Part shown: positions 7,416-63,040 of the stretch, piece after piece
Layout: every line of letters starts with the position of its first letter
Numbering within the stretch: the stretch's first letter is position 1
DNA from: Zygnema circumcarinatum SAG 698-1b
Taxonomy: Eukaryota; Plantae; Zygnematophyceae
Assembly (NCBI GenBank): GCA_037447605.1
Contig: CM074812.1
Span: forward strand, 2,914,001-2,978,000
DNA length: 64,000 nucleotides
Direction of reading: 5' to 3'
Made by a program: the position numbers and the translations under genes
Notes under the pieces: model-generated
Database searches by the model: none
Told to the model about the DNA's origin: nothing
Seen by the model: only the letters and a program-made list of their open reading frames with translations

Positions 7416-7855
7416 ACCCTAATTTCATCTCAAATCGCAACGGCAATTGGGTTCAAATTTTACCCTTTTTTTTATTTTTGCGTTCAGGGCGAATGACGGG
7501 ACCTGAACAAACTCCTTCAATGTTAATTTCGTTTAGTTTAGTTCTAAGCTATTTAATGCTCTGTGCATTCCTGTGGCCAAGTAAGCAAATCTGTAGGAAT
7601 AGAAATTGCCTTTATTGTCCCGCTCCCAAAAGACCCTGTGAAAACGCTGTAAATCTCGAGTAAAGAGTGGCAGAGCGAGAGAGGCGGCGGCGGCGGCGGT
7701 TAAAAGTATATTATGAGAGAGAGAGAGAGAGAGGCAGGCAGGCAGGTGCAGGCGGCAGGCGGCAGGCGGCAGGCAGAGAAAAAAAGAAAAAAAGGAAAAA
7801 AGTATAAAAAGAAAAAGAAGAAAAGAAAAAGGTAAAGAAAAGGGTGTTTGAGAGT

Positions 7856-7929
<74 letters not shown>

Positions 7930-7989
7930 AAAACGCTACAAATTATACAAACCCTAGAGACCCTAAGAATCTTACATACCTTACCAACC

Positions 7990-10900
7990 CTGGAAAGCTT
8001 ACAAATTTCGAACCCAAACAACTCTAGAATCCCTACAAACCCTAGGAACATCCAAAAAGAGGAGTTTTTAAGGGTCCAAAAAGGGCTTAAAAAGGAGAGG
8101 AGAGGAGGTAGCCCACCAGTGAGGAGGGCGGCGAGTTCGGGGTCATCGAGAACGGAACTGTTCTGCATAGAACACCCTGCATTCTCCTCTACTACCTCGG
8201 AGAGAGAGGCCTCCATTTTCTCTCCCTCCAGCGCTGAGGGGCTCCCACATCCTAAAGTTAAGTCGGTAGGAACGGGAGGGGGGAGGGGTTCCATGTTATA
8301 TGGGGGGGCCCTCATTGTTATTTCTTCGGATTCGTTGAATTTCTGTAATGCTTTTTGAGTTTTAGATATCGAGGATCGATGAAGAATAGTTGCGACGATT
8401 TCCGGGGCTAAGTACTCTCCGTTCTTGAGGCGGACCCGGGGGAGGGAGGGAGGGAGAGAGGGAGGGAGAGAGGAAAGGAGAGGGGTGAAAGAGGAGCTGG
8501 AGAGATGAAAGGGGGAGGGAGAGGGGCAGGGAGACGGAGATGAGAAGGGCGGAGGACGAGAGGGAGGGGAGAGGGAGAGAGGTCCTTCGATGAGAGTGGG
8601 AGTGAGAGGGCGGGGTACTATGAGTTGGTGTGTGGGATATGCAGGATTGGGGGTATTGCAGGCGGAGGAAGGTGGAGGGAGAGGGAGGGGGGGAGGGAGA
8701 GAGAGAGAGAGGTGGGAGGGGCCGACGTCAAGAGCAGGGGGTGGAGGTGGAAGGAAGTGGGAGTTGGGAGGTGGGAGGAGGGAGAAGTCAGAGTAGGATG
8801 GAGGGAGGGAGGGAGAAGGAGAGTGAGGGATATTGGGCAGGAGGAAGTTGGGAGAAGGTGTGGATGTGTGAGTGGACGGAACGGGTGCATGGAACGAGTT
8901 AGGGTTGGGGATGTCCGTAGGGGAATAGGGGGAGAGGGAGTAGGGAGGGGGGGAAGGGGAGGAGGACGAGGATGGGAGGAGGAGAGAGAGATGCTGGCAG
9001 GGTGAAGTGAGAGAGGAGGGAGTGAAACAAGGGTGCGACGCTTTGCATGGGCGAAGTAGCTGAAAAATTACAAAATCCAGAGGTAGAGGGAGGGCGAGGG
9101 GGAGATAGAGATAGAGATAGAGATAGAGATAGAGAGAGAGAGGGAGAGCGAGCGAGCGAGAGAGAGAGAGAGAGAAAATGAGTGAAACTAGAAACTTCAC
9201 GAAAGATGCGATAAACATAATACAGTATAATCAAAACAAACGCCGAGAGACAGAGTGAGAGAAGGAGACAAAGACAGGAAGAGCGAGAGCGACAGAAAGG
9301 GAGAGGGAGGGAGGGCGAGGAAAGCGAAAGGAGAGGGAGAGATGGAGACGGACAATTGGAGAGGAGAGAGGAAGTGAGAGGGAGATAGAGTGTTGCTTAA
9401 GAAATACGCACCAACTTCCCTTCTTCAGATTTGCAGAAGCAAATTCGATCCCCAACTGTCAGGCAGTGCGTGCGCATGAATTCGCCTGAATTTAAAAAGT
9501 ATAAAAAAGAAAATTAACAAGGGTGGGGGGGGGGGGTTGCACCCTTTTCCTTTTTTGGAGAAACGTTTATTTTTTTTTTGGAATGAAAAAAAAAAGTGAA
9601 AGGAAGTACAGACCTGCCCCCTCGAGAACGTACATTCTGCTCTTATTTTGCCAATACCTGCGCCCCCTCCAAAGAGTGGGAAGAAAGCAATAGAAGTGAG
9701 GCAAGTGATCTTTATTGGGTAAATGGTAGAGAATGGGAGAAAGGAAAGAGAGGGAGAGTTAGAGGGTGTTGTAGATGTCAGAGTAGAGAGTAAAGGGAGA
9801 GAGCGAGAGAATTAGAGGGAGCTGTGGTTGTCAGAGTAGAGTAAAGAGACAAAGAGGGAGTACAGATGAAATTAGAGGGAGCTATAGTTGGCAGTGTAAC
9901 GAGTGGAGAGAGAGGGAGAGNNNNNNNNNNAAACCCTAGGAACATCCAAAAAGAGGAGTTTTTAAGGGTCCAAAAAGGGCTTAAAAAGGAGAGGAGAGGA
10001 GGTAGCCCACCAGTGAGGAGGGCGGCGAGTTCGGGGTCATCGAGAACGGAACTGTTCTGCATAGAACACCCTGCATTCTCCTCTACTACCTCGGAGAGAG
10101 AGGCCTCCATTTTCTCTCCCTCCAGCGCTGAGGGGCTCCCACATCCTAAAGTTAAGTCGGTAGGAACGGGAGGGGGGAGGGGTTCCATGTTATATGGGGG
10201 GGCCCTCATTGTTATTTCTTCGGATTCGTTGAATTTCTGTAATGCTTTTTGAGTTTTAGATATCGAGGATCGATGAAGAATAGTTGCGACGATTTCCGGG
10301 GCTAAGTACTCTCCGTTCTTGAGGCGGACCCGGGGGAGGGAGGGAGGGAGAGAGGGAGGGAGAGAGGAAAGGAGAGGGGTGAAAGAGGAGCTGGAGAGAT
10401 GAAAGGGGGAGGGAGAGGGGCAGGGAGACGGAGATGAGAAGGGCGGAGGACGAGAGGGAGGGGAGAGGGAGAGAGGTCCTTCGATGAGAGTGGGAGTGAG
10501 AGGGCGGGGTACTATGAGTTGGTGTGTGGGATATGCAGGATTGGGGGTATTGCAGGCGGAGGAAGGTGGAGGGAGAGGGAGGGGGGGAGGGAGAGAGAGA
10601 GAGAGGTGGGAGGGGCCGACGTCAAGAGCAGGGGGTGGAGGTGGAAGGAAGTGGGAGTTGGGAGGTGGGAGGAGGGAGAAGTCAGAGTAGGATGGAGGGA
10701 GGGAGGGAGAAGGAGAGTGAGGGATATTGGGCAGGAGGAAGTTGGGAGAAGGTGTGGATGTGTGAGTGGACGGAACGGGTGCATGGAACGAGTTAGGGTT
10801 GGGGATGTCCGTAGGGGAATAGGGGGAGAGGGAGTAGGGAGGGGGGGAAGGGGAGGAGGACGAGGATGGGAGGAGGAGAGAGAGATGCTGGCAGGGTGAA

Positions 10901-12152
10901 GTGAGAGAGGAGGGAGTGAAACAAGGGTGCGACGCTTTGCATGGGCGAAGTAGCTGAAAAATTACAAAATCCAGAGGTAGAGGGAGGGCGAGGGGGAGAT
11001 AGAGATAGAGATAGAGATAGAGATAGAGAGAGAGAGGGAGAGCGAGCGAGCGAGAGAGAGAGAGAGAGAAAATGAGTGAAACTAGAAACTTCACGAAAGA
11101 TGCGATAAACATAATACAGTATAATCAAAACAAACGCCGAGAGACAGAGTGAGAGAAGGAGACAAAGACAGGAAGAGCGAGAGCGACAGAAAGGGAGAGG
11201 GAGGGAGGGCGAGGAAAGCGAAAGGAGAGGGAGAGATGGAGACGGACAATTGGAGAGGAGAGAGGAAGTGAGAGGGAGATAGAGTGTTGCTTAAGAAATA
11301 CGCACCAACTTCCCTTCTTCAGATTTGCAGAAGCAAATTCGATCCCCAACTGTCAGGCAGTGCGTGCGCATGAATTCGCCTGAATTTAAAAAGTATAAAA
11401 AAGAAAAAATTAACAAGGGTGGGGGGGGGGGGTTGCACCCTTTTCCTTTTTTGGAGAAACGTTTATTTTTTTTTTGGAATGAAAAAAAAAAGTGAAAGGA
11501 AGTACAGACCTGCCCCCTCGAGAACGTACATTCTGCTCTTATTTTGCCAATACCTGCGCCCCCTCCAAAGAGTGGGAAGAAAGCAATAGAAGTGAGGCAA
11601 GTGATCTTTATTGGGTAAATGGTAGAGAATGGGAGAAAGGAAAGAGAGGGAGAGTTAGAGGGTGTTGTAGATGTCAGAGTAGAGAGTAAAGGGAGAGAGC
11701 GAGAGAATTAGAGGGAGCTGTGGTTGTCAGAGTAGAGTAAAGAGACAAAGAGGGAGTACAGATGAAATTAGAGGGAGCTATAGTTGGCAGTGTAACGAGT
11801 GGAGAGAGAGGGAGAGAGAGAGAGAGAGAGGGGGTGAGGTAAGGAATTTTCTGGAGAGGTATCTACACAGAAATCGATGTTTGCAACTTCAATTTTTTTT
11901 TTCCTTTTTTTTAATTTTTACCTCAACCGAAACAGCCAATCGCGACCGAATCCGTCACCCATGTGCACATTTACGCCCTCCTTGTGACCGATCGGAGGAA
12001 GGTATTTTTCGGCTGCCCGCTGCCTCCCAAAAAGGATCCCAAAACATTTTCGGGCAGTGCTTTGATGAAACCCTAAAAAAATCTGAAATTTCAAAGTTGC
12101 AGTAAGAGCACTCGGGTCGTTAGGAAAATAACCAATACTACAAAGTGGCTCT

Positions 12153-12183
<31 letters not shown>

Positions 12184-15100
12184 GTTCTCTTTCTCTCTGT
12201 CCACCCTCCTTTCCCCCTCCTATCCCCCTCTCCCTCCCTCTCCTCCTCCCCCACCACCTCCTCCACCCCCCCTCTCCGTACCTCCCACCTCCCCTCTCGC
12301 TCTCCCCTTCTCTCCATCTGTCCACTCTCACCCCCCCCCCAGTCTCTTTCTGTCTCTCTTGCTCTACCTCACATTCTCTGTCACTAAATATATTTCAATC
12401 CAATTCATGAAATTAGCCTTTTCATACCTTCGGAAGAATTATGCGCCCCAAGCCTCCAGTGTCTGTCTTTGTCAGCGCCTTTTCGAACAGTACTCCCGTC
12501 CTCTGCATAAGGAGTGAAAAAAAGAAATATCTAGATTAAACGATTTTCGGGGAGAGGGGGAGGGAGGGAGAGCGAGGGGAGGCCGCTATCCATGCATGCA
12601 CCCATCTATTCATCCATCCAATCATCCTGATAAATATTCATGCATCCATTCAAGGATGCATTCGCGAATCAACCACCCGTGCATGCACCTTCCATGCACA
12701 CATTCACCGATCCACAAAGCATCTATAGCATCCATGCATGCATGCATGCATACACCTTTCCACCCACTACACATGCATATTCGTCCACCCATCCATCCAT
12801 CCATCCATGCATACAGGCATAGTGATACGGCTTGCTCTCCCTCTCCAAGTTCTCGCGTCCTTACCTTATCCACTCCATCGTCTCCGCCAATGTCGTAAAC
12901 CTCTCCCACCTCCGCCTCTCCTCTCCCTCCCCCCTCCTCCTCTTCCTCCGACCCGGACACTGCAGGACTCTTTCTTGGCGATGTGCGTGATTGGCTGCTT
13001 GGAAACCGAGGAAACGGAAATGCAGAATCACGGAATTCCGGAACAGGGAATTCCTTTATCCCATTACCTGCGTAGTTTTCCGTTGAAAGTAGCAAATCGG
13101 ATGCAAAATTTTCGTCGAAAAGCGGATTAATCTCAGTTTTTTGCCCTTCCGCTCCTTGCAAATTTGAGTGAAGGATAGCTTCTAAACCCGTTTCCAACTC
13201 TTTACTGTTATTTCTATGATTACCGTTACCGTTACTGTAATTATTCGTCTCCTCTATCGGGATCGGCATCTCTTCTAAGGACCCCTTCAACCTGCTCTCA
13301 AAATCATTTACAAGGAGTGCCTCCATGGGCTTCTCAAGCTCTCTACTTTCTCCCCTCCATAACGGCTCCGCGGTTCTATGTCGGCCGACGTGAAATCCGT
13401 TTGGGTTTAACTGAAACCCCTTTCTATGTACATTGGCCTTCATTTCTGAGATTCCATCGTCTCCAAACAGTTGGTGACTGACTTCCATTAGCCTCACCTT
13501 CTCCTGCATTGATCCTGTTCACCTCAATGCAAACTTTGTTACTCAAAAGACTTAATATGATATATTAAGATTATAAAAAAGGTAAGAGAAAGTAGAATAA
13601 TACAACATGATGAAAGGCGAACGGACCTGATATACTTCTTCCCAACGTTCTATGCTGTGAATCGTTACTGAAATTCCGTTCCCCAGCCATAAATCCGTCC
13701 GTAGTAAAAGAAGAAGCTCTCCTTTCAAACTGCTGTCCATTTGGCGGCTCCGTTTCTACGCCGTAGAACGGAGGATAAAACTGTTCAGTGTATGCCGGTC
13801 CCGTTCCCGCTACCCTCTCCTTGCGAGCGGGCCCACCCACATAGAACGCTCCGTTTAACGCCCAACACCCATTTCCATGTCGGTTGTTTGAGAGAGAGGT
13901 CTCTGCATCTTCCGGACTCTTCAGAGCATTAGAAGCGACAAAACTACCTGGGTAGCTTCTCTGGGACCACAGTTCTGTTGCATGGAACCCCTTCACAGTT
14001 CCGTTTCCCTTTCCGCTTCCTCCTCTTCCTCGCAGCATGTTCCCCTCTCTCTCTCTATTCAGTTGAGTGGCCGCCTTTGCGCGGTTCCGTGCCGCTTTCA
14101 GTCGCAGTTTACGGAGTCCGTCGGAGTCGTCCATAGAACCCACCTTATGCAGAACCTCGTCTACCAACTCGGGTGGACCTTTTGCCTTTTTTGTGGGAGA
14201 ATGCCAGAGGGAGGGGGGCTCCATAGTGTGACAGGGAAGAAAAGGGGGTGGGAAAGAGGGTGGGAGAGAGTGTGGGAGAGAGGGTGGGAGAGAGGGAGGG
14301 AGAGAGGGAGGGAAAGTGGAGGTAGCAGACGGAGAGGCGGGAATTAGCAATGGATTATTTGGGTTCTGAGAGACTCCCAAGTTCGCTAAAGAGGCGGCGG
14401 CCTGCTCTCCCTTCCTCTCCCTCTGCCTCTCCCTCTCCCTCTCCTCCATCCAAGTGTCATCTCCTGCGGCTCCGGAATTCAAATCCAGTAACAGAGGAGG
14501 GGGGAAAGTAGGAGAAATCGCTTGTTCCTCCATATCTTCTTTTAAATCAAAACCTTTCTGCAACCTTAAAATTTTCTGAAATTTGTGTGAAATACCTTGT
14601 TGATGTCTTCCATACACACGTTGCTCTTCTTCTGAAATAGGAACTTTTGGAAGTAAAGTAAACGCAGAAGAGTCGGAAAAAGTTACTTGAGATTGACTTA
14701 AGTTCGACCCTCCGTAACTTAATAAAGGGTCTCTATGATTGCTTTGATTCGATAAGCACGGAAATCGCCAAACATCGGAACTTGGCAAATTGGAAACCTC
14801 AGTCAGTGTTGCTCCGTTCGATGGCCACGTGTCACCATAAAACTGAGAACCCATGTAGTTCCCGTTTCCTTGCCCGCTTCGTTCCGTAATCTGTTCCGTA
14901 ATCCGTTCGTATAGTGTTTTCTCTGGTTTTTTCGAATTTTTCCTTTGCTTGTATGAAGCCTTTGAAGATTCCTTGCTCTCTTCATCTCCAGCCTTGACAT
15001 TAGACTTGAATTTAGGGGATGCAGCCTCCTCAAGTGCAGGTTGAGCCCCCCCTCCTCCTCTCACTCCATTCTCCTCCAGCTCCTTTTCCACATTCTTCAA

Positions 15101-17374
15101 ATGTTCTTTCAAATTTGAATCTTCTTTTGCCTTTGCCCCTCCGTGTCTCTCCTTCTCAAAAACATTCCATTCAGAAAATTCGCCCAAATTGGTATCCATC
15201 GCTTCCACAGAAATGGTTTCCTTTATCGAGGTGTTCGAAAAAGTGGGAAATTCTGAAGGTGGTTCTTTCTCCTTGGTAATGTTACTGTAGGAGCTCGAAA
15301 TCGGCCGAACTTGGCTCGAGCCAAAAAGTGGCCTTTTCGAGGGGAAAACTGAAGAGAGCCATGACAGGTGCCTCGATGGTCCCCCAGTTACCAAACTTGA
15401 CTCACATTTAGTCGACTCGTTGCCGCTCGTTTCCATGTCCGATTTTGACTCGGTTGCAACCGTCTCCACAAACGGTTTCGACTGCCCCTCTCGCTCTCTC
15501 TCCCTCTCTCTCTTTCTCCCTCTCCCTCTCTCTCCTCCTCTCTCTCTCTCTCTCCCTCTCTCGAAATCCATTCCTTCGCTCTCCGAGAGAGAAACCCGCC
15601 CGTCAATAGAATTTTCTTTTCCAGGCTGCCCGAGAATTTGTTTTTGCGCCTGCCCGGCGTCCGTGCGAACGATGCTTTCCGCCCGAGATGGCATCTTCGA
15701 TTTTTCAAAATTCTTAATTTTCTCTCCTGATTAAAAAGACAAGAAGAAAATGAAAAGAAAGAAAAGGAAAAAAAATCCGAAGAAAAATGTATTTTCATAG
15801 TATGCTCGATCAGCTCCTCTCATCTCTCCTTCCCTCCTGCTATTTCTCCCTCCCTGCCATCTCACTCCTCCATCCAGACCACTACTCTGGCATCCTCGAT
15901 CATCTCACCCTTCTCCCTCCCTCTCTCCCTTCCTCCCTAACTCCCACAGCCCTCCCTCCCTCCCTCCCCTCCCTCTCCTCCTTCTCTCCCTCCCCTTCTC
16001 CCTTCCTCACTCTTTTCCTCCCCCTCACCACCCCCTGTATCCCCTCCTCCCTCCCTCCCTCCCTCCTTCCCTCCCTCCCTCCCTCCCTTCCTCCTTCCCA
16101 CCCCCTCCCTCCTCTCCCTCTTTCCCTCCCTCCCCCCCAATTTCTTGACCAATGATTGCTCCAAGTGTCAGTACATCCCAAAGCGCATTATTCATTCATG
16201 AAAGCCACATGACCGCCTCCATTCACAAAGCGCGTCTCTGGAATCTCAGAAACACAACAGACTACGATTGAAGATACTTTTTTGTGGGAGAGATTGTTGG
16301 GGGGACACAAGAATTACATTAAGAAAAAGGTGAAAAAGAGGGCGTAAAAAAAGGATTATTCCAAAGAAAGTCAGGTCACCGCAGTTGTCTCTCAACCCAC
16401 ACTCACTCTCTCTTGACACATTTCCCTCCTCCCTCTCTCTATCCCAACCACTATTCCTCCCTTCCTCCTCTCCCTCTATCCCTCCTTCCCTCCCTCTCTC
16501 TATCCCACCCACTCGTCCTCTTCCGCCCCTCCCTCACTTTCCGATCTCTCCATCCCCCATACTTTTTCTCTCCCCCAAATCCCTCAAAAAAAATTCTCAA
16601 CTCACCTCAAATCTCTCCCAATCTCTCCCACTCTCTCATTCCTCTCTCTCCACGCTCTTTCTCTCTCCCTCTCTCCACCTCCCCTCTCTCGCTTCTCCTA
16701 CGGTCCATCTTTCTCTGTTTTCCCCCCTTTCCCCCCGTCTCTCTCGTCCTCTCCTCCCTTTCTCCCTCGTCTGCCTCGTCACCCCCGCTCTCTCTCTCCT
16801 TCTCTTCTTCGCGCTCTCTCTCTCTCTCTCTCTACTTTGCTGACTGCCACTCCCCTTAATATCTCCACCCCCCCTCTCCCTCTACTCTCCTCAAAGATCT
16901 TCAGAGCTCACCTGCACTGGCCGACTCTGGCTCCATCACCACCACCACCTCCGCTTCTCCAGTCTTCTTCTGCATCCTCTTCTCTCTCACCCTCTCTTGC
17001 TCTCTCTCCTCCCTCTCTTCCTTCCGCAATCCTTGCCTCGCCTCCCTCTCCCCCTCTCCTTCTTCTCTCTCAATCTCCCATTTTCTGTTTTTCCCACGCT
17101 CAATTTCCTTTCTTACCTTTCTCCCTCTACCTGTCAATCTCCTTCTTTCTCCCTCCTTCCTCCCTCTCCCCTTCCTCTCCACTCCCCTCCCTCCCTCCCT
17201 CCCTCTCTCCCTCACCCTCCCTGTCTCCCTCCCTCCTCCCTCTCTCCCTCCTCGTCTCCCTGCCTCCCCCCTCCCTACCTCCTCCTCTCTCCTTCCTCCT
17301 TCCTCAACAATCTCCCACAGCCTCAGTCCCACATTTTTATTTTCTCGTCCAATTTCTTTCTCTCTCCTCCACAC
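7990..17374 (-). CDS. LAV-family (ABI3/FUS3/LEC2/VAL-like) B3-domain transcription factor, probably >1400 aa
   Basis: Phase-compatible exons: about 17374-16912 (tentative), 15726-13627, 13514-12865, 12502-12428 (RTGVLFEKALTKTDTGGLGRIILPK), 12019-11922 (RAAEKYLPP...DWLFRLR), 11553-11510 (YWQNKSRMYVLEGA), 11379-11306 (GEFMRTHCLTVGDRICFCKSEEGKL), then a long Pro/Ser-rich exon from 10953 (duplicate from 9059). The joined B3 aligns with ABI3 LGRIVLPK...WPNNKSRMY.LE..GDF. N- and C-termini are unresolved. Confidence 0.88.
8037..11817. repeat. About 1.89-kb tandem duplication across a 10-N gap (8037-9920 vs 9931-about 11817); probable unmerged contig overlap
   Basis: The copies are essentially identical apart from homopolymer lengths and abut the gap at 9921-9930. 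It duplicates the last B3 exons (9657-9614, 9485-9412, from 9059). Confidence 0.85.
12591..12811. promoter_or_regulatory. Intronic RY-element (CATGCA) array
   Basis: 11 plus-strand CATGCA hexamers counted (12591, 12595, 12639, 12682, 12693, 12733, 12737, 12741, 12745, 12772, 12806) in the intron 12864-12503 of the B3 gene. Confidence 0.55.
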
Positions 17375-19635: not shown

Positions 19636-20039
19636 AAGAGGAGACTGCAAGACGACAAATATAACTTGTCTTTTTATGTTTCACTTGTTCTATTCCGTAC
19701 AGTAGCTGTACGAAAACCGTTTCCATGTGTGGAACGCAACCTCTTTCTGCCTTTTGGCGTACGTCAGCAGCCCAGACCAGGCACGAGCGGTTCCCAGATT
19801 TCTATTTGAAATGCCTTGGCTTCGGGGACCGCAATTCGCACCCAAAAATAGGGTTTAAGTCATAAAGTCGTCCTCTTTCTATGTTCCCGTTCCACCGTTC
19901 GCAGTTCCCTGTTTGGCGCAACAGCTGTTTAGGCCTGAAACCATACTCTACTGTTCCTCTGTTCGCAGTAGAACGGCCAGTTCAACAGTTTATATGGTAA
20001 ACAGGGTAGACCGCTGACATGCATGCAGAACCGCCGTAC

Positions 20040-41777: not shown

Positions 41778-42166
41778 GCGCGCTTCCGGAAGTCTGTGAC
41801 ATGTGTCACGCTTAAGGGAGTGCTTCCATATTCATGTGTGACATGTGTCACGTTCGATAGAGGCATTTGGAAGGAAGAGTTGTCTAAGGGTTCAAAGGAA
41901 CCCTAACAACCCTAAACCCTGAAAACCCTAAAATTAAGTCCATGTTGTATTTCACGTTTGTTTGTTGCTCGTAAGATGTAGAGGCGTGTTACAGTGCTAG
42001 AAGTTGTACCATTACAAGTTACAGAGTCTGATGCCGGGACGGCTGCTCGATGTCTCCGTACAGTATTGGAGGTGTTGAGAGTCGACGCAAATTGAAGGAC
42101 GCATTCATTATTATTTGTTAAGTACGACACTGCGAGGAAATAAAATTTCATTATCTTTTTTTTTTT

Positions 42167-49314: not shown

Positions 49315-51770
49315 GGAGAGGGAAGAGAGAGGGAGGGGAGAAGAAAGAGGGAGAGAGAGGGGAGAGAGAGAGGAGAGAGAGAGTGGGGGAGGGGGGGAGA
49401 GAGAGTGGGGGGGAGAAAGATGGAGGAGGAAGGGGAGAGAGTGAGAGAGAGGAGAGAGAGAAGGGGGGAGGAGGGGAGATAGAGAGGAGGGGCGGAGAAA
49501 GCGAGAGAGAGAGGGGGGAGAGATAGAGGGGAAGAGAGAGAGTGGGGAGAGAGGGGGAGAGAGAAAGAGAGAGAGAGGAGAGAGAGAGAGGGAGAGGGAA
49601 GAGAGAGGGAGGGGGGAAGAAAGAGGGAGAGAGAGGAGAGAGAGAGAGAGTGGGGAGGGGGGAGAGAGAGGGGGGGAGAGAGAGGGAGAGGAAGAGAGAG
49701 AGAGGAGAGAGAGGAGAGAGAAGGGGGGAGGAGGGGAGATAGAGAGAAGGGGCGGAGAAAGGGAGAGAGAGAGAGGGGAGAGATAGAGGGGGAAGAGAGA
49801 GAGAGGAGAGAGAGAGAGAGAGGGAGGGGGGAGAGAGGGAGAGAGGTGACAGAAAGAGGGAGAGAGAGGGGAAAGAGAGGCGGACGAAAGAGAGCGCGAG
49901 AGAGGGAGGGACGCGGGGAGAGAGAGGGAGAAAGAGGGAGAGAGAGAGAGAGGGAAGAGAGAGAGAGAGACCTGTGGGAGGGCGCTATGTGCAGCATCTG
50001 CAGCAGCAGGCGGAGTCTCCCTCTGTCCGCTACCATTCCCTCCACACACGGAGCGTGCTGAGTGAGGCGAGAGAGGACTCCCAACGCTGTCTCTGTCACG
50101 GTTCCATGTGCCGCCTCCGTTTCCGTTAAACAGTCGAACAACGGAGACATGAATTCCGTTGAAGCCAACAAAGAGGCCAAAGTGGGCACCGAAGTGATCA
50201 CGTTCTGTGGAACACGAAAGAAAAAAATAAGAAAAAAATAAGAAAATGAGAAAAGAGAGGAGGAAAAGAAAAGGCAAGGAAAACAAGTTTTTTCTGTTAT
50301 TATTATTGTTATATGCCTATTTTCATTTCACTTTTCTTCGTACTGCATGTTCTTCGTCATCCATTTTTGCCTTTTTGTTGTTTAAATATAATGAATTGTT
50401 CATTTATTTTGATTGAGGGAGCGAGGAAGACACAAGGGAAGACCGAAACAAGGGGGGGGAAGAGGGGAGAGAGAGAGAGGGGGGGAAGAAAGGGAGAGAG
50501 AGAGAGAGGGGAGAGAGTGCGGGGGAAGAGAGAGAGAGAAAGAGGGGAGAGAGAGAGGGGGAAGAGAGAAAGAGGGAAGGGAAGAGAGAGAGAGAGGGGG
50601 CAGAAAGAGGGAGAGAGAGAGAAGGGAGAGAGAGGGGGAAGAGAGAGAGAGAGGGAGAAAGAGGGAGAGAGAGCGAGGCCGTTGGGCTCGCAATACAGTT
50701 CTGTAATGTGTGTAAAACCCCTAAACCCAAAAACCCTAACCCCTAATGCTTGTAGAAGTTGAGGCATAGCTCTGCTCTTAATTTCATAATGCCCAGACTC
50801 AGAATTGTCCTAAATAAAGGGTTCAGATTCAAATATAAAAAGAGAACCGGAAACTCAGAAACCGGAAAACGAAAACTGAAAGGGAAAGAAAAAAATGGAA
50901 AGGATGGGAAGTGACCTGAAGAGACAAAAGTGCCATTTTCAGTTTCTCGTCTTCTTCTGAAAATTGATCCCGAATTGCCCTCTCCTGCTTCCTCCCTCCC
51001 CCCCCTCCTCCCTCCTCCCAGTCTTCGGGAATTTTGAACCCAAATTCAAATTCCGAATTTTCATTTTCCCCTTCACCCTCTCCCTCTCCCTCTTCCTCTC
51101 TCTCTCCCTCTCCCTCTCCCTCTCCCTCTCCCTCTCTCTCCCCTCCTCTCTCCCCTCTTGCCACTCCATGTGTCGCCGTTTCTGTTCCACTCGACGACAT
51201 AAACGAACGGTCCAGATCAGATCCTGTGACGGCTTCGTTCGGATCTTGTTCGATCTCAACCATTGATTTGTGCTTCTTCTTTTTCCGCCTGTTTTCAAAG
51301 TTTTCTGAGATATATTTGACTAAAGCTAGACAGAAATTTTCCGAATTACTGAGTTCGAAATCGGGCTGCTGGTTGTAGATTCTAAGATACACATCCCCCA
51401 CCTGCAGGAAAAAAAGGAAAAAGAAAAGGAGGGCGGGGGGGGGGGAAGATAGGGAGAGAAGAGATAGGGAGGGAGGGAGAGAAGTGATGGGGGAAAGGGA
51501 GAGAACTCCCAGGGGGGGGAGCGAGAAGAGATAGAGGGAGAGAGAAGAGGTAGGGGAGGAGGGAAGAAGACGAGGCAAGGGAGAAAGAGAGAGAAGAGAT
51601 GGGGAGTAAAAAGTGTCTTAAGTTCAAAATAAGGAGAATTCACAGTTTGTTTGCATTACAAAGGAAGCATTGCTTCATTGGCACAATTGGAAACTAGAGA
51701 GGGCAGGGAGGAAGGGGGAGGGAGAGGCCAGACGAGAGGGAGAGGGGAAAGCAACTGAGAAAGAAAGAGC

Positions 51771-58100: not shown

Positions 58101-61100
58101 AAATCTATCCTTCATCACACTCCATCCTCTCTCCCTCTCCCTCTCGTCCTCTCTCTTCCTCTCTCTCCCTCTCCCGTCTCCCGTCTCCCGCCTCCCGTCG
58201 CCCCTCTCCTCTCTCCCCACTCCTCTCTCCCCACTCCTCTCTCCCTCTCCCTCTCTCTCCCCCTCTTTCCTCTGCCCCCCCTCCTCTCCTCTCTCCTCAC
58301 TCCCCTCTCCCTCTCCCCACTTCTCCCTCTCTCTCCCCCTCTTTCCTCTGCCCCCCCCTCCTCTCCTCTCTCCTCACTCCCCACTCCCTCTCCCCATTCC
58401 CTTCTCCCTCTCCCTCCCCCTCTTTCCTCTGCCCCCCCTCCTCTCCTCTCTCCTCACTCCCCTCTCCCTCTCCCCACTCCCTTCTCCCTCTCTCTCCCCC
58501 TCTTTCCTCTACCCCCCTCTCCCCACCTTTACCATGCTCGTGACTCGCTCCCTCCCTCTCCTCCACTGAAATCTCGAGAATCGCAAAAGCCTCCTCTTCC
58601 GACAGATCCAACGGTCGTCTTGTGAGCTCCTCCCGCCACATGGCGAGCAGCGATTGGAGGAATTCCACGTGTTCAACGATCGGCCAATCAGGAAAGCGAA
58701 CCTCATCGCAAAGGTTTCTGAGGTAGTAGCGGTGACACCACATTTCATCTTTAAGTTCTGGATATGTGACGGGAGGCATGGGGGCATACTCATACAGAGC
58801 ATGGGAATGCTGGGCGAGCTTTCGAGGGAAGTCTCCCAAATGCTCCATTATCTGTCTCTCCCACATCCGGGGGAGGGAGGGGGGGGGGNNNNNNNNNNAG
58901 AGAGAGTGGGAGAGGGGATAGAGAGAGGAGAGGCTCAAACGGTGGGGGGAAGGGGGGGGGGAGAAGGGCAGAGAGAGTGGGAGAGGGGATAGAGAGAGGA
59001 GAGGCTCAAAGTGTGGGGGGAAAAGGGGGGGGTGGGGAGGGGGGGGAAAGGAAAGAGAGTGGGAGGGAGAGGGGATAGAGAGAGGAGAGGCTCAAAGGGT
59101 GGGGGGAAAGGGAGGAGGGGGGGGGGGAGGAGGGTGTGGTGGGGTGGGAGAGAAGAAAAGAGAAGAGGAGAATGAAAAGACAAGAACAATTATTTTTTTG
59201 AAGAAATGATAGAATATTAAGAATTATGATTTAAAAAGAGAAGGATTCGATTCTACGAGTCTTACGAAAAGAGTTTTTGACTTGGTATAGTAGTACATTC
59301 TGGTGGTCATATTCGTATGTTCGTTTTGTGGGAACTGCGTGAGACCCCCAAATCTCTCTCACCCTGTCCTCTACCCTCGACCTCTGCCTCTCAATCTTCC
59401 CCCACTCTCTCCCACTCTTCTCCTCTCTCTTCTCCCTTTCCTTACTACCCCTATCTCGCATCCTCCCTGTTGTGCCTGATCAATGATCATCCCTCTCCCT
59501 TCTCCTTCTCCCCTGTCTTCTCACGCTCCCTCACTGATCGATACACCTCTGGCCTCCTCTCCCTCTTCCTCTCTCCCACTCCCTCCCTACTGTACCCAAT
59601 CAATGACGCTCCCCACCCCTCTCCCCACCTCTCTCCCACTCCCCCCCGACAGCACGTAATCAATGAATCTCCTCTCCCCCTTTCCCGCCGCTCTCCTATC
59701 CCCCTTCCTCCCTCCCATACCATACCTGATCGATGAGTCTCCATCTGTCCATATGAGTTCTCGTTCTCCCCTTTCTCACTCCCTCACTGCACCTAATCAC
59801 TTACTCTCCGCACCTCTCTCTCCCTTCCCTCTCCCACCCACTACCTACTTTCCATACCTGATTGATGAGTCTCCGTCCTCTCATCTCATGTGTCCATATA
59901 AGTTCGGGTGTATCGGCATCTCCCACCATAGCTGCTGCAAAGGCAGCTGCTCCCCTCCTCTCCAACACATACAAAAGACTCTCTGGGAGGAGACCACCCA
60001 ACACACTCCTTCTCGCAAGCGGTAGTGAAGAGAGAGAGGCCGCCTCTTTCCCTCCGTGAAACGCCTGCTTTGTGTGTGTAAATGCGAGCAGGTTGGCTAC
60101 TGGTTCTAAGTTGGAGCCCGGGTAGGAGAGAGCGAAGTAGAAGAGGCCAGTGGTGTAGAGGCGAGCCATGGCGGAGGGGTTTCGGGCTGTGATGGACTGG
60201 AGGAGGGAGGAGGCGGAGGCGACAACGGGAGGCTCTCCGGAGAGGAGGGCCTGCAGAGAGAGAGAGAGCGAGAGAGAGGGAGGAGGGGGGGAGAGGATGT
60301 GAGAGAAGAGGGGGAGGGGGGGAGAGAGAGAGAGAGGGAGGAGAGCGGGGGGGAGGATGTGAGAGGAGGGGGAGGGGAAGAGGGAGGAGAGGGGAGGAGA
60401 GGGGGGGAGAGGATGTGAGAGAAGAGGGGGAGGGGGAGCGAGAGAGAGGGAGGCGAGGGGGGGAGAGGACGTGAGAGAAGAGGGGGAGGGGGAGAGAGAG
60501 AGAGAGGGAGGAGAGGGGGGGAGAGGATGTGAGAGAAGAGGGGGAGGAGGAGAGAGAGAGAGAGGGAGGAGAGGGGGAGAGAGGATGTGAGAAAAGTGGG
60601 GGAGGAGGAGAGAGAGCGAGAGGGAGGAGAGGGGGGGAGAGGATGTGAGAGAAAAGGGGGAGGAGGAGAGAGAGAGAGAGAGGGAGGAGAGGGGGGGGGA
60701 GGATGTGAGAGAAGAGGGGGAGGAGGAGAGAGAGAGAGAGGGAGGAGTGGGGGGGAGAGGATGTGAGAGAAGTGGGGGAGGAGGAGAGAGAGCGAGAGGG
60801 AGGAGAGGGAGAGAGTGGATGTGAGAGAAGAGGGGGAGGGGGCGAGAGTGAGAGGGGGGAGGGAAGGGGGGGAGAGGATGTGAGAGAAGAGGGTGAGAGA
60901 GAGAGAGAGAGAGAGGGGAGAGAGGGGAGATAGGAAGACAGAGAGAGGGCGAGGGAGAGAGAAAGAGAAGCGAGGAAGAAGAAAGAGGGGAATGAGGGAA
61001 TGAGAGAGAAAAACAGGTAATGGAAAAAAAAGATGAGCATCAAGAGGAGGGAGGGGGAAGGGAGGAAAGAGGGGAAACGAGAGAGTTAGGGGAGGGGGGA

Positions 61101-61666
61101 GGACAAAGGGAAAGGGAGGAGAGAGTGAGCAAGCGAGGGAGAGGGCGGGAGAAAAAAGAGAGAGAGGGGGTGTAGGATGGAGGAAGAACGGGAAAAGAAA
61201 GGAAGGTACAGGAAGGAGGGAGGGAGGGAGAAAGGACGAGGGAGCGAGGTAGAGAGAGTGAGAGAGAAAAAGAGAAAGCGAAAGGGAAGATGTTATGGAG
61301 AGTAGGACAGCTCCGGGACAAAGTCTCAATGAAATGAACTTTAAAATAAAAAACAAAAGTCTCATGTTGTTGCTGTCTGTTGTTGCTGTTCTCTTGTTTC
61401 TCTTATAATTACTTACTTGGGCAATGTGTGGAAGACATTGAGGACTTGAGAGAATTTTTTTGACCCGCGGAGTCGGAGTTACGAGCTCTCCCGCATCGTC
61501 TAAATCCGCTCTAAGAGAAGTCATCGAATGTAAAATGGACAATGCACATTCTCCCACCTGCACCTCTTCAAAATAGGAAACAAAGTAAATAAGGAAGAGA
61601 TACATACAGTAAGAGGGGAAGGTAGGGGTGCGGGAAACGAGAGCAAGAGCGAAAGAGAGAGGGGGA

Positions 61667-61750
<84 letters not shown>

Positions 61751-63040
61751 AAAAAAACGCAAGCAATTAGCACGTGTTGCAGGTGAGAGAGGGAGGGAGG
61801 GAGGGAGGGAAAGTGCAGGCCCTTGGAGCACGTTGGAAAAGGGCGTGTGTGACAGCGGAAGGGGGGCAAAGGGAGAGTGGGAGGGAGAGACAAAGATTGG
61901 GTCAGACAAACACTGACACAGATACTACGCACGGGGAGAGAGAGAAAGAGACACAGACACGAGAAACAGACTGGCACAGAGATAGTGAGACACAGACACA
62001 GAGACACGGATACAGACAGAGACAGGCAGACATACAGACAGGCCCTCACATACACAGGTACAGATATAGTTAGACAGACAGACAGACAAACAAACAGACA
62101 TACAGTGAGACAGACAGACAGATGCAGACAGACAGAGACAGACATACACAGAAGTACATATACAGAATGACAGCGAGCAGAGTGAGAGAGACAGACAGAC
62201 AGATGGATAAACAGACACATACATACAGACAGACACAGACAGACAGTCAGGCAGACAGACAGACAAACAGACATACTGACATACAGACATACACACACAC
62301 ACACAGGTACATATACAGACTGACAGGCAGAGAGAGAGACCCAGACCTGCGCGTGTGTCAAGACCCCAACTCTTGTCGCCAAGGTCCACCGAAGCTCCCT
62401 CACATCCCGCAGCCTCCTCCACTCCGCCATGCCTGCCGCCCAGCAGCGGGAGGAGAGGGAGACCTCCCGCAGAGAGGCAGCTCGACGGAGGGCATCCTTT
62501 TGGAGGGGGCCTTTCCGTGCTCCGTCTGCCGTTATGTAGAACCATTCTTTGCTGGGTTCCATGTGAGTAGTTGCCGTTAAGAGGTTCGACTGCGCAAAGA
62601 GAAAGTGAAACAGTTGGAAAAGGAAAGAAGCAAAGGAAAGGGCGAAAGGAGAAAGGGAAAAGTGGTTGTCATTTTCCTGTTATTTCATCTCTCTGTGGCT
62701 TCCCTCTGTGTGTGTCTCTTCTTTTATATTTTTCTTGGGTTTTTTTGAGGGGAAATGGAAGAGGCCATTCTCCGAATGCAGGGGTTTGAAAATTGAGAAT
62801 TCTTGCTGTTGGAATGGTGATAGAGATCAGAGCTCAAACCGGGGAGGATGGGAAGACGGAGAGAAGGGAGAGAGTGACGGAAAGAGGAAGGAGAGGAGAG
62901 CGAGAGAGGAGGGAGACAAGAGAGAGCGAATAGAAGGGAAGAAGAGATACACGTGTACAGCACAGGGAATGAAGAAGGTATGCAGAAAAAGCAAGAGCAT
63001 TAGCGAGAGGAAAATAAGGAGGGAGCGAGTGGGAGAGAGT

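Follow-up and report, generated by a model that had tools for sequence, protein, structure and literature searches.

Does a dense cluster of RY hexamers in an intron of a B3 gene of the alga Zygnema mark a target of the gene's own product, or is it a by-product of the repeat in which it lies? The preliminary description of the locus had proposed an autoregulatory switch or a site of Polycomb nucleation, with the caveat of microsatellite drift. We addressed the question within a 64-kb window, the whole stretch of DNA that was analysed, by recounting the motif, modelling the host gene, examining the repeat structure of the tract and comparing the encoded B3 domain with solved RY-binding domains.

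The RY cluster and the gene that holds it

The RY-hexamer cluster occupies positions 12591..12811. Its plus strand carries 11 CATGCA hexamers (starting at 12591, 12595, 12639, 12682, 12693, 12733, 12737, 12741, 12745, 12772 and 12806), and our recount agrees with the 11 copies in about 220 bp that had been described before. Five further copies lie on the minus strand and read as TGCATG on the plus strand (12593, 12680, 12735, 12739 and 12743). After grouping, the hexamers fall into about 7 separate RY-bearing sites, spaced mostly 34–48 bp apart with a single gap of 11 bp. Motif, TRF and palindrome searches all recovered a perfect (CATG)4.5 run of 18 nt with a self-complementary core at 12733..12750, CATGCATGCATGCATGCA. 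The octamer CATGCATG has 4 copies in the tract, compared with 5 in the whole window.

Elsewhere in the window the motif is scattered, as had been noticed earlier: the runner-up 221-bp stretch holds 3 overlapping RY matches (20018–20027), and all the remaining ones hold 2 or fewer. Outside the tract, CATGCA has 23 matches in the 64 kb, which places it in the 92nd percentile among hexamers of the same composition and in the 67th among all hexamers. The density of CAT triplets in the tract (24 per 200 bp) is the highest in the window, for which the 99th percentile is 10. No further (CCAT)n or (CATG)n runs of at least 3 units were found in the 64-kb window outside the tract. It had been considered that (ATGC)n/(CCAT)n tracts might be common in unrelated introns; within the window, the tract is unique. 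Dinucleotide shuffles of the tract (n = 5000) gave 3.2 ± 1.7 RY hexamers with a maximum of 11, against 16 observed, and base or dinucleotide composition fails as an explanation of the cluster.

The gene model was read from the minus-strand sequence, using ORFs and GT-AG sites, and the phases agree at every junction checked. All its exons and introns are given here for the minus strand. The putative 5′ end is a large, low-complexity coding exon (13627..15694) with an orphan ORF of 707 aa, for which a protein homology search and a search of 1.84 billion representative proteins both returned 0 matches. A 112-nt GT-AG intron (13626..13515) joins it in frame to the next coding exon (12865..13514), which was delimited by its ORF and this junction and ends in AAG/gtaagg. 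The tract-holding GT-AG intron follows (12503..12864). It has the donor AAG/gtaagg, a polypyrimidine tract, the acceptor cag/AGG and phase 0 on both sides, and 220 of its 362 nt are occupied by the RY-bearing tract. Downstream of it lie exon A (12428..12502), the first B3 exon, which codes for the N-arm and contains LFEK...GLGRIILPK; an intron of mostly GA/CT low-complexity sequence with one telobox at 12068–12075 (12020..12427); exon B (11922..12019), the second B3 exon; exon C (11510..11553), the third, which codes for the C-arm, YWQNKSRMYVLEGA; and exon D (11306..11379), the fourth, with an approximate 3′ end. The position claimed for the cluster, in the intron directly before the first B3 exon, thus appears correct in this model. 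Translation straight through the tract would meet a stop at 12622, and splicing would therefore be needed to reach the B3 domain; the intron 12864..12503 is presumably spliced.

Exons A–D were searched against solved structures one at a time. Exon A matches residues 8–28 of the VAL1 B3 chain 6fas_A (E 0.014); RAV1, LEC2 and TEM1 score equally, and NGA1 is also matched. Exon B matches residues 30–59 of the same chain (E 0.002) and hits only LAV proteins, VAL1 and LEC2. Exon C, which could also be aligned with FUS3, LEC2 and VAL1, matches residues 61–76 (E 0.15), again with hits to LAV proteins only (VAL1, LEC2 and FUS3). For exon D alone, there was no match among solved structures. Because exons A, B and C tile consecutive positions of the VAL1 B3 domain (residues 8–76), the host is, by these matches, a LAV-type (VAL1-like) B3 gene, and the earlier assignment to this family stands. 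Pfam found no domain in the ORFs and single exons, the upstream exon 12865..13514 included, these pieces being too short for B3. A degenerate DNA pattern for W-x-N-K-S-R-M-Y-V-L-E-G had 0 matches in metagenome contigs.

A compound tetranucleotide repeat as the probable source of the cluster

The cluster lies within a longer degenerate tetranucleotide tract (12588..12822, 235 nt), which was delimited by lag identity and CAT spacing and reads (NCAT)n on the plus strand and (AUGN)n in the pre-mRNA. Its identity to itself at lags of 4, 8, 12 and 16 nt is 0.55, 0.50, 0.49 and 0.42, compared with about 0.19 at other lags. This period-4 autocorrelation spans all 235 nt, decayed parts included, and declines gradually, with about 0.3 left by lag 40. 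The spacing of the sites hinted at a higher-order period near 40 bp, which was rejected, as identity at lags 40 and 44 does not rise above that at neighbouring multiples of 4. CAT occurs 29 times in the tract, with a spacing of exactly 4 nt in 15 of 28 cases. With a low threshold, TRF detected period-4 arrays of (ATCC)8.2, (GCAT)6.0 (12728–12751) and (TCCA)7.2 inside it. The embedding in (CCAT)n mentioned in the preliminary description was seen as well, as (ATCC)8 at 12588–12620 and as a perfect (CCAT)5 run, a sister unit that is not RY, found by TRF and run search at 12789..12808.

We then compared RY and non-RY units within the tract. The variable position of the unit is G 11–13 times and C 11 times. 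At the level of hexamers, there are 11 copies of CATGCA, 8 of CATCCA, which differs by one substitution and is not RY, and two each of CATACA and CATTCA. Thus, RY copies are not clearly favoured over near-identical non-RY variants (11 vs 8). Markov models trained on the tract gave 10.0 ± 4.1 (order 2) and 15.2 ± 5.5 (order 3) RY hexamers, against the 16 observed; among 5000 simulated tracts per model, at least 16 RY hexamers were reached in 485 and 2249, respectively. In build, the tract is a compound microsatellite of tetranucleotide units, (CCAT)n/(GCAT)n, now degenerate. What had been a caveat, microsatellite drift, turns out to be the main result, given the period-4 structure over the whole 235 nt and the match with low-order Markov models.

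Where the tract has decayed and is no longer repetitive, isolated copies of CATGCA (about 4–5 by eye) are slightly more numerous than those of CATCCA (about 1–2), which speaks against neutrality, but these numbers are too small for a test.

Introns filled with repeats are the norm at this locus. The TRF output for the 64 kb comprises 285 repeat rows, with AG/CT repeats dominating the window, and the remaining introns of the B3 region consist of purine or pyrimidine runs for 24–40% of their length. A further degenerate tetranucleotide tract, 200 bp long and made of (AGAC)n units, lies in the same window at 62072–62271.

We consider a neutral microsatellite in a B3 intron, its unit happening to spell RY, to be the best explanation of the cluster, with a probability of about two in three (0.68). 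Replication slippage would have grown (CCAT)n/(GCAT)n within one short intron of the LAV-type B3 gene. Because abutting GCAT units spell CATGCA, the RY array would have arisen as a by-product of the repeat. The compound repeat would then have decayed and most likely stayed in the intron as neutral filler, comparable to the GA/CT repeats in the gene's neighbouring introns. We infer both the slippage origin and the neutrality of the tract; a microsatellite origin is compatible with later co-option.

Against neutrality, we noted that the sole ATGC-class tract of the window sits in its one gene of the family that reads this motif, which is a striking coincidence, and that other microsatellites saturate the window, yet a second (CCAT)n/(CATG)n run is absent from it.

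Alternative readings of the tract

Among the alternatives, a co-opted RY platform survives best, although we regard it as unlikely. Born as a microsatellite, the tract would now be a dense platform for B3 proteins (about 7 sites per 220 bp), where the protein encoded by the host gene, or a paralogue of the LAV type, would act in feedback or in Polycomb recruitment. The 16 exact RY hexamers, the 4 octamers among them, the uniqueness of this tract type in the window and the LAV-type host gene with its conserved contact residues (see below) are consistent with such a role. In addition, VAL1-B3 recognises the complete 6 bp of CATGCA, and at FLC the RY element of intron 1 is bound by VAL1/VAL2, recruits PRC2 and is required for silencing by Polycomb (PMC5934628, PMC7797069), in agreement with what the preliminary description had said about RY, VAL1 and the FLC intron. 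Enrichment of RY in responsive promoters of a streptophyte alga (PMC10272232) points in the same direction, as does a candidate EAR-like motif, DLTLG, seen by eye downstream in the same gene (8250–8264).

However, RY and non-RY units are equally common in the tract, and the repeat structure accounts for their count. Pfam detected neither a PHD-like nor a CW domain in the pieces searched. Whereas the FLC site is close to the promoter, some 2.9 kb separate the algal tract from the putative start codon upstream of it, and the coincidence of motif and gene was noticed post hoc, among very many windows scanned. We also considered signs of a Polycomb response element. GA/CT repeats and the telobox at 12068–12075 are indeed present in the next intron, but both types are common throughout the window (11 teloboxes vs 2.2 expected, beside the 285 TRF rows), and the combination of RY with a telobox and GA repeats, although reminiscent of a PRE, was set aside as uninformative.

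Whether the gene's own product could read the array depends on its B3 domain. The algal B3 keeps the equivalents of the VAL1 contacts K297, R309, K314, R347, W349 and M356 (VAL1 numbering). Other contacts are changed: S302 to Thr, I307 to Leu, V311 to Ile, R306 to Gly and Q345 to Arg. An Arg at the position equivalent to R306 is presumably also absent from ABI3 and LEC2. An Arg at the position equivalent to Q345 is also stated for ABI3 (PMC5934628). The bases are contacted in VAL1 B3 by R309, W349, N351, N352 and M356; N351 is hydrogen-bonded directly to two bases, T5 and C1, and its replacement by alanine (N351A) compromises the specific complex, while VAL3, without N351, N352 and M356, was judged unable to read the full RY element (PMC5934628). 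This set is incomplete in the alga. Its C-arm loop has the sequence W-Q-N-K-S-R-M, where VAL1 and FUS3 have W-P-N-N-N-S-R-M and LEC2 has W-S-N-N-K-S-R-M. With one residue less and 1 of the 2 Asn left, the loop departs from all three solved RY-binding B3 domains, which argues against the platform. As the loop reads the CA/TG end of RY, the algal B3 may recognise TGCA in the centre of the element and yet behave differently at this outer end. Binding of the gene's B3 to the full RY element is uncertain, because one of the two Asn is missing from the C-arm loop; a LAV paralogue could still bind RY. The more specific proposal, that a LAV B3 factor or paralogue would bind the microsatellite-born array of about 7 sites in the intron next to its own DNA-binding exons, with copy-number-tunable feedback or Polycomb nucleation as the outcome, seems to us more doubtful still. 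The autoregulatory switch or Polycomb nucleation originally claimed found no support, as RY and non-RY units have similar frequencies and a Markov model gives the same count. Nothing tested shows the RY tract regulating its host gene.

A role of the tract at the RNA level appears very improbable. As the gene is on the minus strand, its RNA carries UGCAUG, 11 times and together with (AUGG)n, and the tract in the pre-mRNA might be a splicing enhancer or silencer, or might form a CAUG hairpin that draws the splice sites together or controls intron retention. Retention would produce a truncated protein without B3, because of the stop in the read-through frame. Many inverted-repeat pairs lie within the tract, GA/CT arms bracket it, and the minimum-energy fold pairs both ends of the intron. 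Moreover, five sequencing runs hold 82–84% of the sampled words from a stretch that is about 76% exon by our model, which would fit retention if the runs are RNA. The fold of the intron is, however, only weakly better than that of shuffled sequences (z = −2.07; 3 of 100 shuffles fold as well), and on this value RNA structure of the intron was ruled out as an explanation of the tract. In a scan of 7500–16600, no Rfam family scored above threshold in the tract. To our knowledge, RBFOX-type readers of UGCAUG occur in animals and not in plants. The same Rfam scan gave sub-threshold hairpin-like matches at 14236–14467, outside the tract.

It is just as implausible that the tract is the body of a small mobile element with a microsatellite core between short inverted repeats (a matter of its origin, not its function): an imperfect inverted repeat does bracket it, with a GA-rich left arm at 12551..12576 and a CT-rich partner at 12830–12846 (13 nt at 92%, 17 nt at 76%), but the arms are plain GA/CT low-complexity sequence of a kind found all over the window, no target-site duplication was seen at the arm ends, the 64-kb window has no second copy, and the inverted repeat is probably due to chance in a GA/CT-saturated genome.

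Comparison with known systems

The tract was compared with RY/Sph clusters bound by LAV factors, as in seed-gene promoters and FLC intron 1. It shares with them the exact CATGCA/TGCATG core in several copies per about 200 bp and, with FLC intron 1 in particular, the intronic position in a gene for a developmental regulator; a LAV-type B3 is, moreover, encoded at the locus itself. In those systems, however, one to a few RY elements are set in unrelated sequence, whereas the algal elements are part of a microsatellite of period 4, whose RY units alternate with non-RY ones. Unlike the FLC site, the algal tract is far from the presumed start of its gene, and the alga has neither seeds nor vernalisation. 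Should it nevertheless be a B3 target, it would reveal LAV/RY self-regulation or Polycomb recruitment in an alga, and the seed-plant circuit would predate land plants.

A second comparison is with another streptophyte alga, Klebsormidium nitens, where RY is enriched in auxin-induced promoters, its binding protein being left unidentified, and where the B3 protein KnRAV bound CCTG and not RY (PMC10272232). Common to both algae are the RY motif and B3 proteins as its suspected readers. The Klebsormidium data are a statistical enrichment of single promoter motifs, in contrast to the intronic array of Zygnema. Given the enrichment in Klebsormidium promoters, RY readers are plausible in algae of that grade, and RY-reading factors probably exist there. 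If the Zygnema tract is a true B3 target, its LAV-type gene would become a candidate for the missing RY-binding factor of streptophyte algae.

Microsatellites can act as response elements of transcription factors, as do GGAA repeats for EWS-FLI1 and (TCAT)n in intron 1 of the human tyrosine hydroxylase gene. In these cases and in the alga alike, a slippage-born unit equals the core motif of a factor, and copy number could tune expression. For GGAA and (TCAT)n, the role is backed by binding and reporter data. For motif arrays in repeat-rich introns, a repeat-aware null model is required before a regulatory label is applied.

Intronic compound microsatellites, to which the favoured reading of a neutral repeat assigns the tract, share with it the head-to-tail arrangement of 4-nt units, the presence of two unit types one substitution apart, the decay at the edges and the placement within a short intron whose neighbours are likewise of low complexity. 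What distinguishes the algal tract is its unit class, ATGC/ATCC, which no other tract shares in a window where AG/CT repeats prevail.

Assembly gap and gene model of the B3 gene

Two near-identical copies of a 1.9-kb sequence lie in tandem at window positions 8033–9920 and 9931–11820, separated by a gap of 10 N (9921–9930), and the duplication begins exactly past this gap. The duplicated content comprises exons C and D of the minus-strand LAV-type B3 gene (11510–11553 and 11306–11379, respectively) together with the coding ORF downstream. The tandem arrangement is most probably an artefact of scaffolding, one that makes the model of the B3 gene too large.

Teloboxes and repeat tracts across the window

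The telobox AAACCCTA occurs 11 times in the window, against 2.2 copies expected from shuffles, at positions 269, 6434, 7414, 7949, 8037 (equivalent to 9931), 12068, 19849, 41923, 50731 and 63680; three to four of the 11 sit at the 3′ end of the B3 gene. At 41908–41932 and 50715–50746 the window also carries short interstitial telomere-like arrays.

Beyond the main RY tract, a decayed microsatellite in an intron of the B3 gene, the window holds a single RY octamer. This is the palindromic CATGCATGCA at 20018–20027, isolated in non-repetitive surroundings. As a comparator for slippage-born tracts we used a tract of 200 bp (62072–62271; lag-4 identity 0.72) made up of degenerate tetranucleotide repeats, (AGAC)n/(AGAT)n, and enclosed by a long minus-strand ORF (60106–62562).

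Terminal coding regions of the B3 gene

The N-terminal exon (13571–15694, minus strand) encodes 707 aa of low-complexity, orphan sequence, with no homologue detectable among 1.84 billion representative proteins; the gene's own protein seems to be absent from protein collections. Within this large coding exon, a GA-rich and a CT-rich repeat (14246–14313 and 14405–14444) form a long hairpin. This hairpin gave many miRNA-like Rfam matches, all of them sub-threshold and far under the gathering scores.

At the other end of the gene, the C-terminal ORF contains the peptide DLTLG (8250–8264, with a copy at 10144–10158, minus strand). Spotted by eye only, this peptide resembles an EAR-type repression motif, for which it is a candidate.
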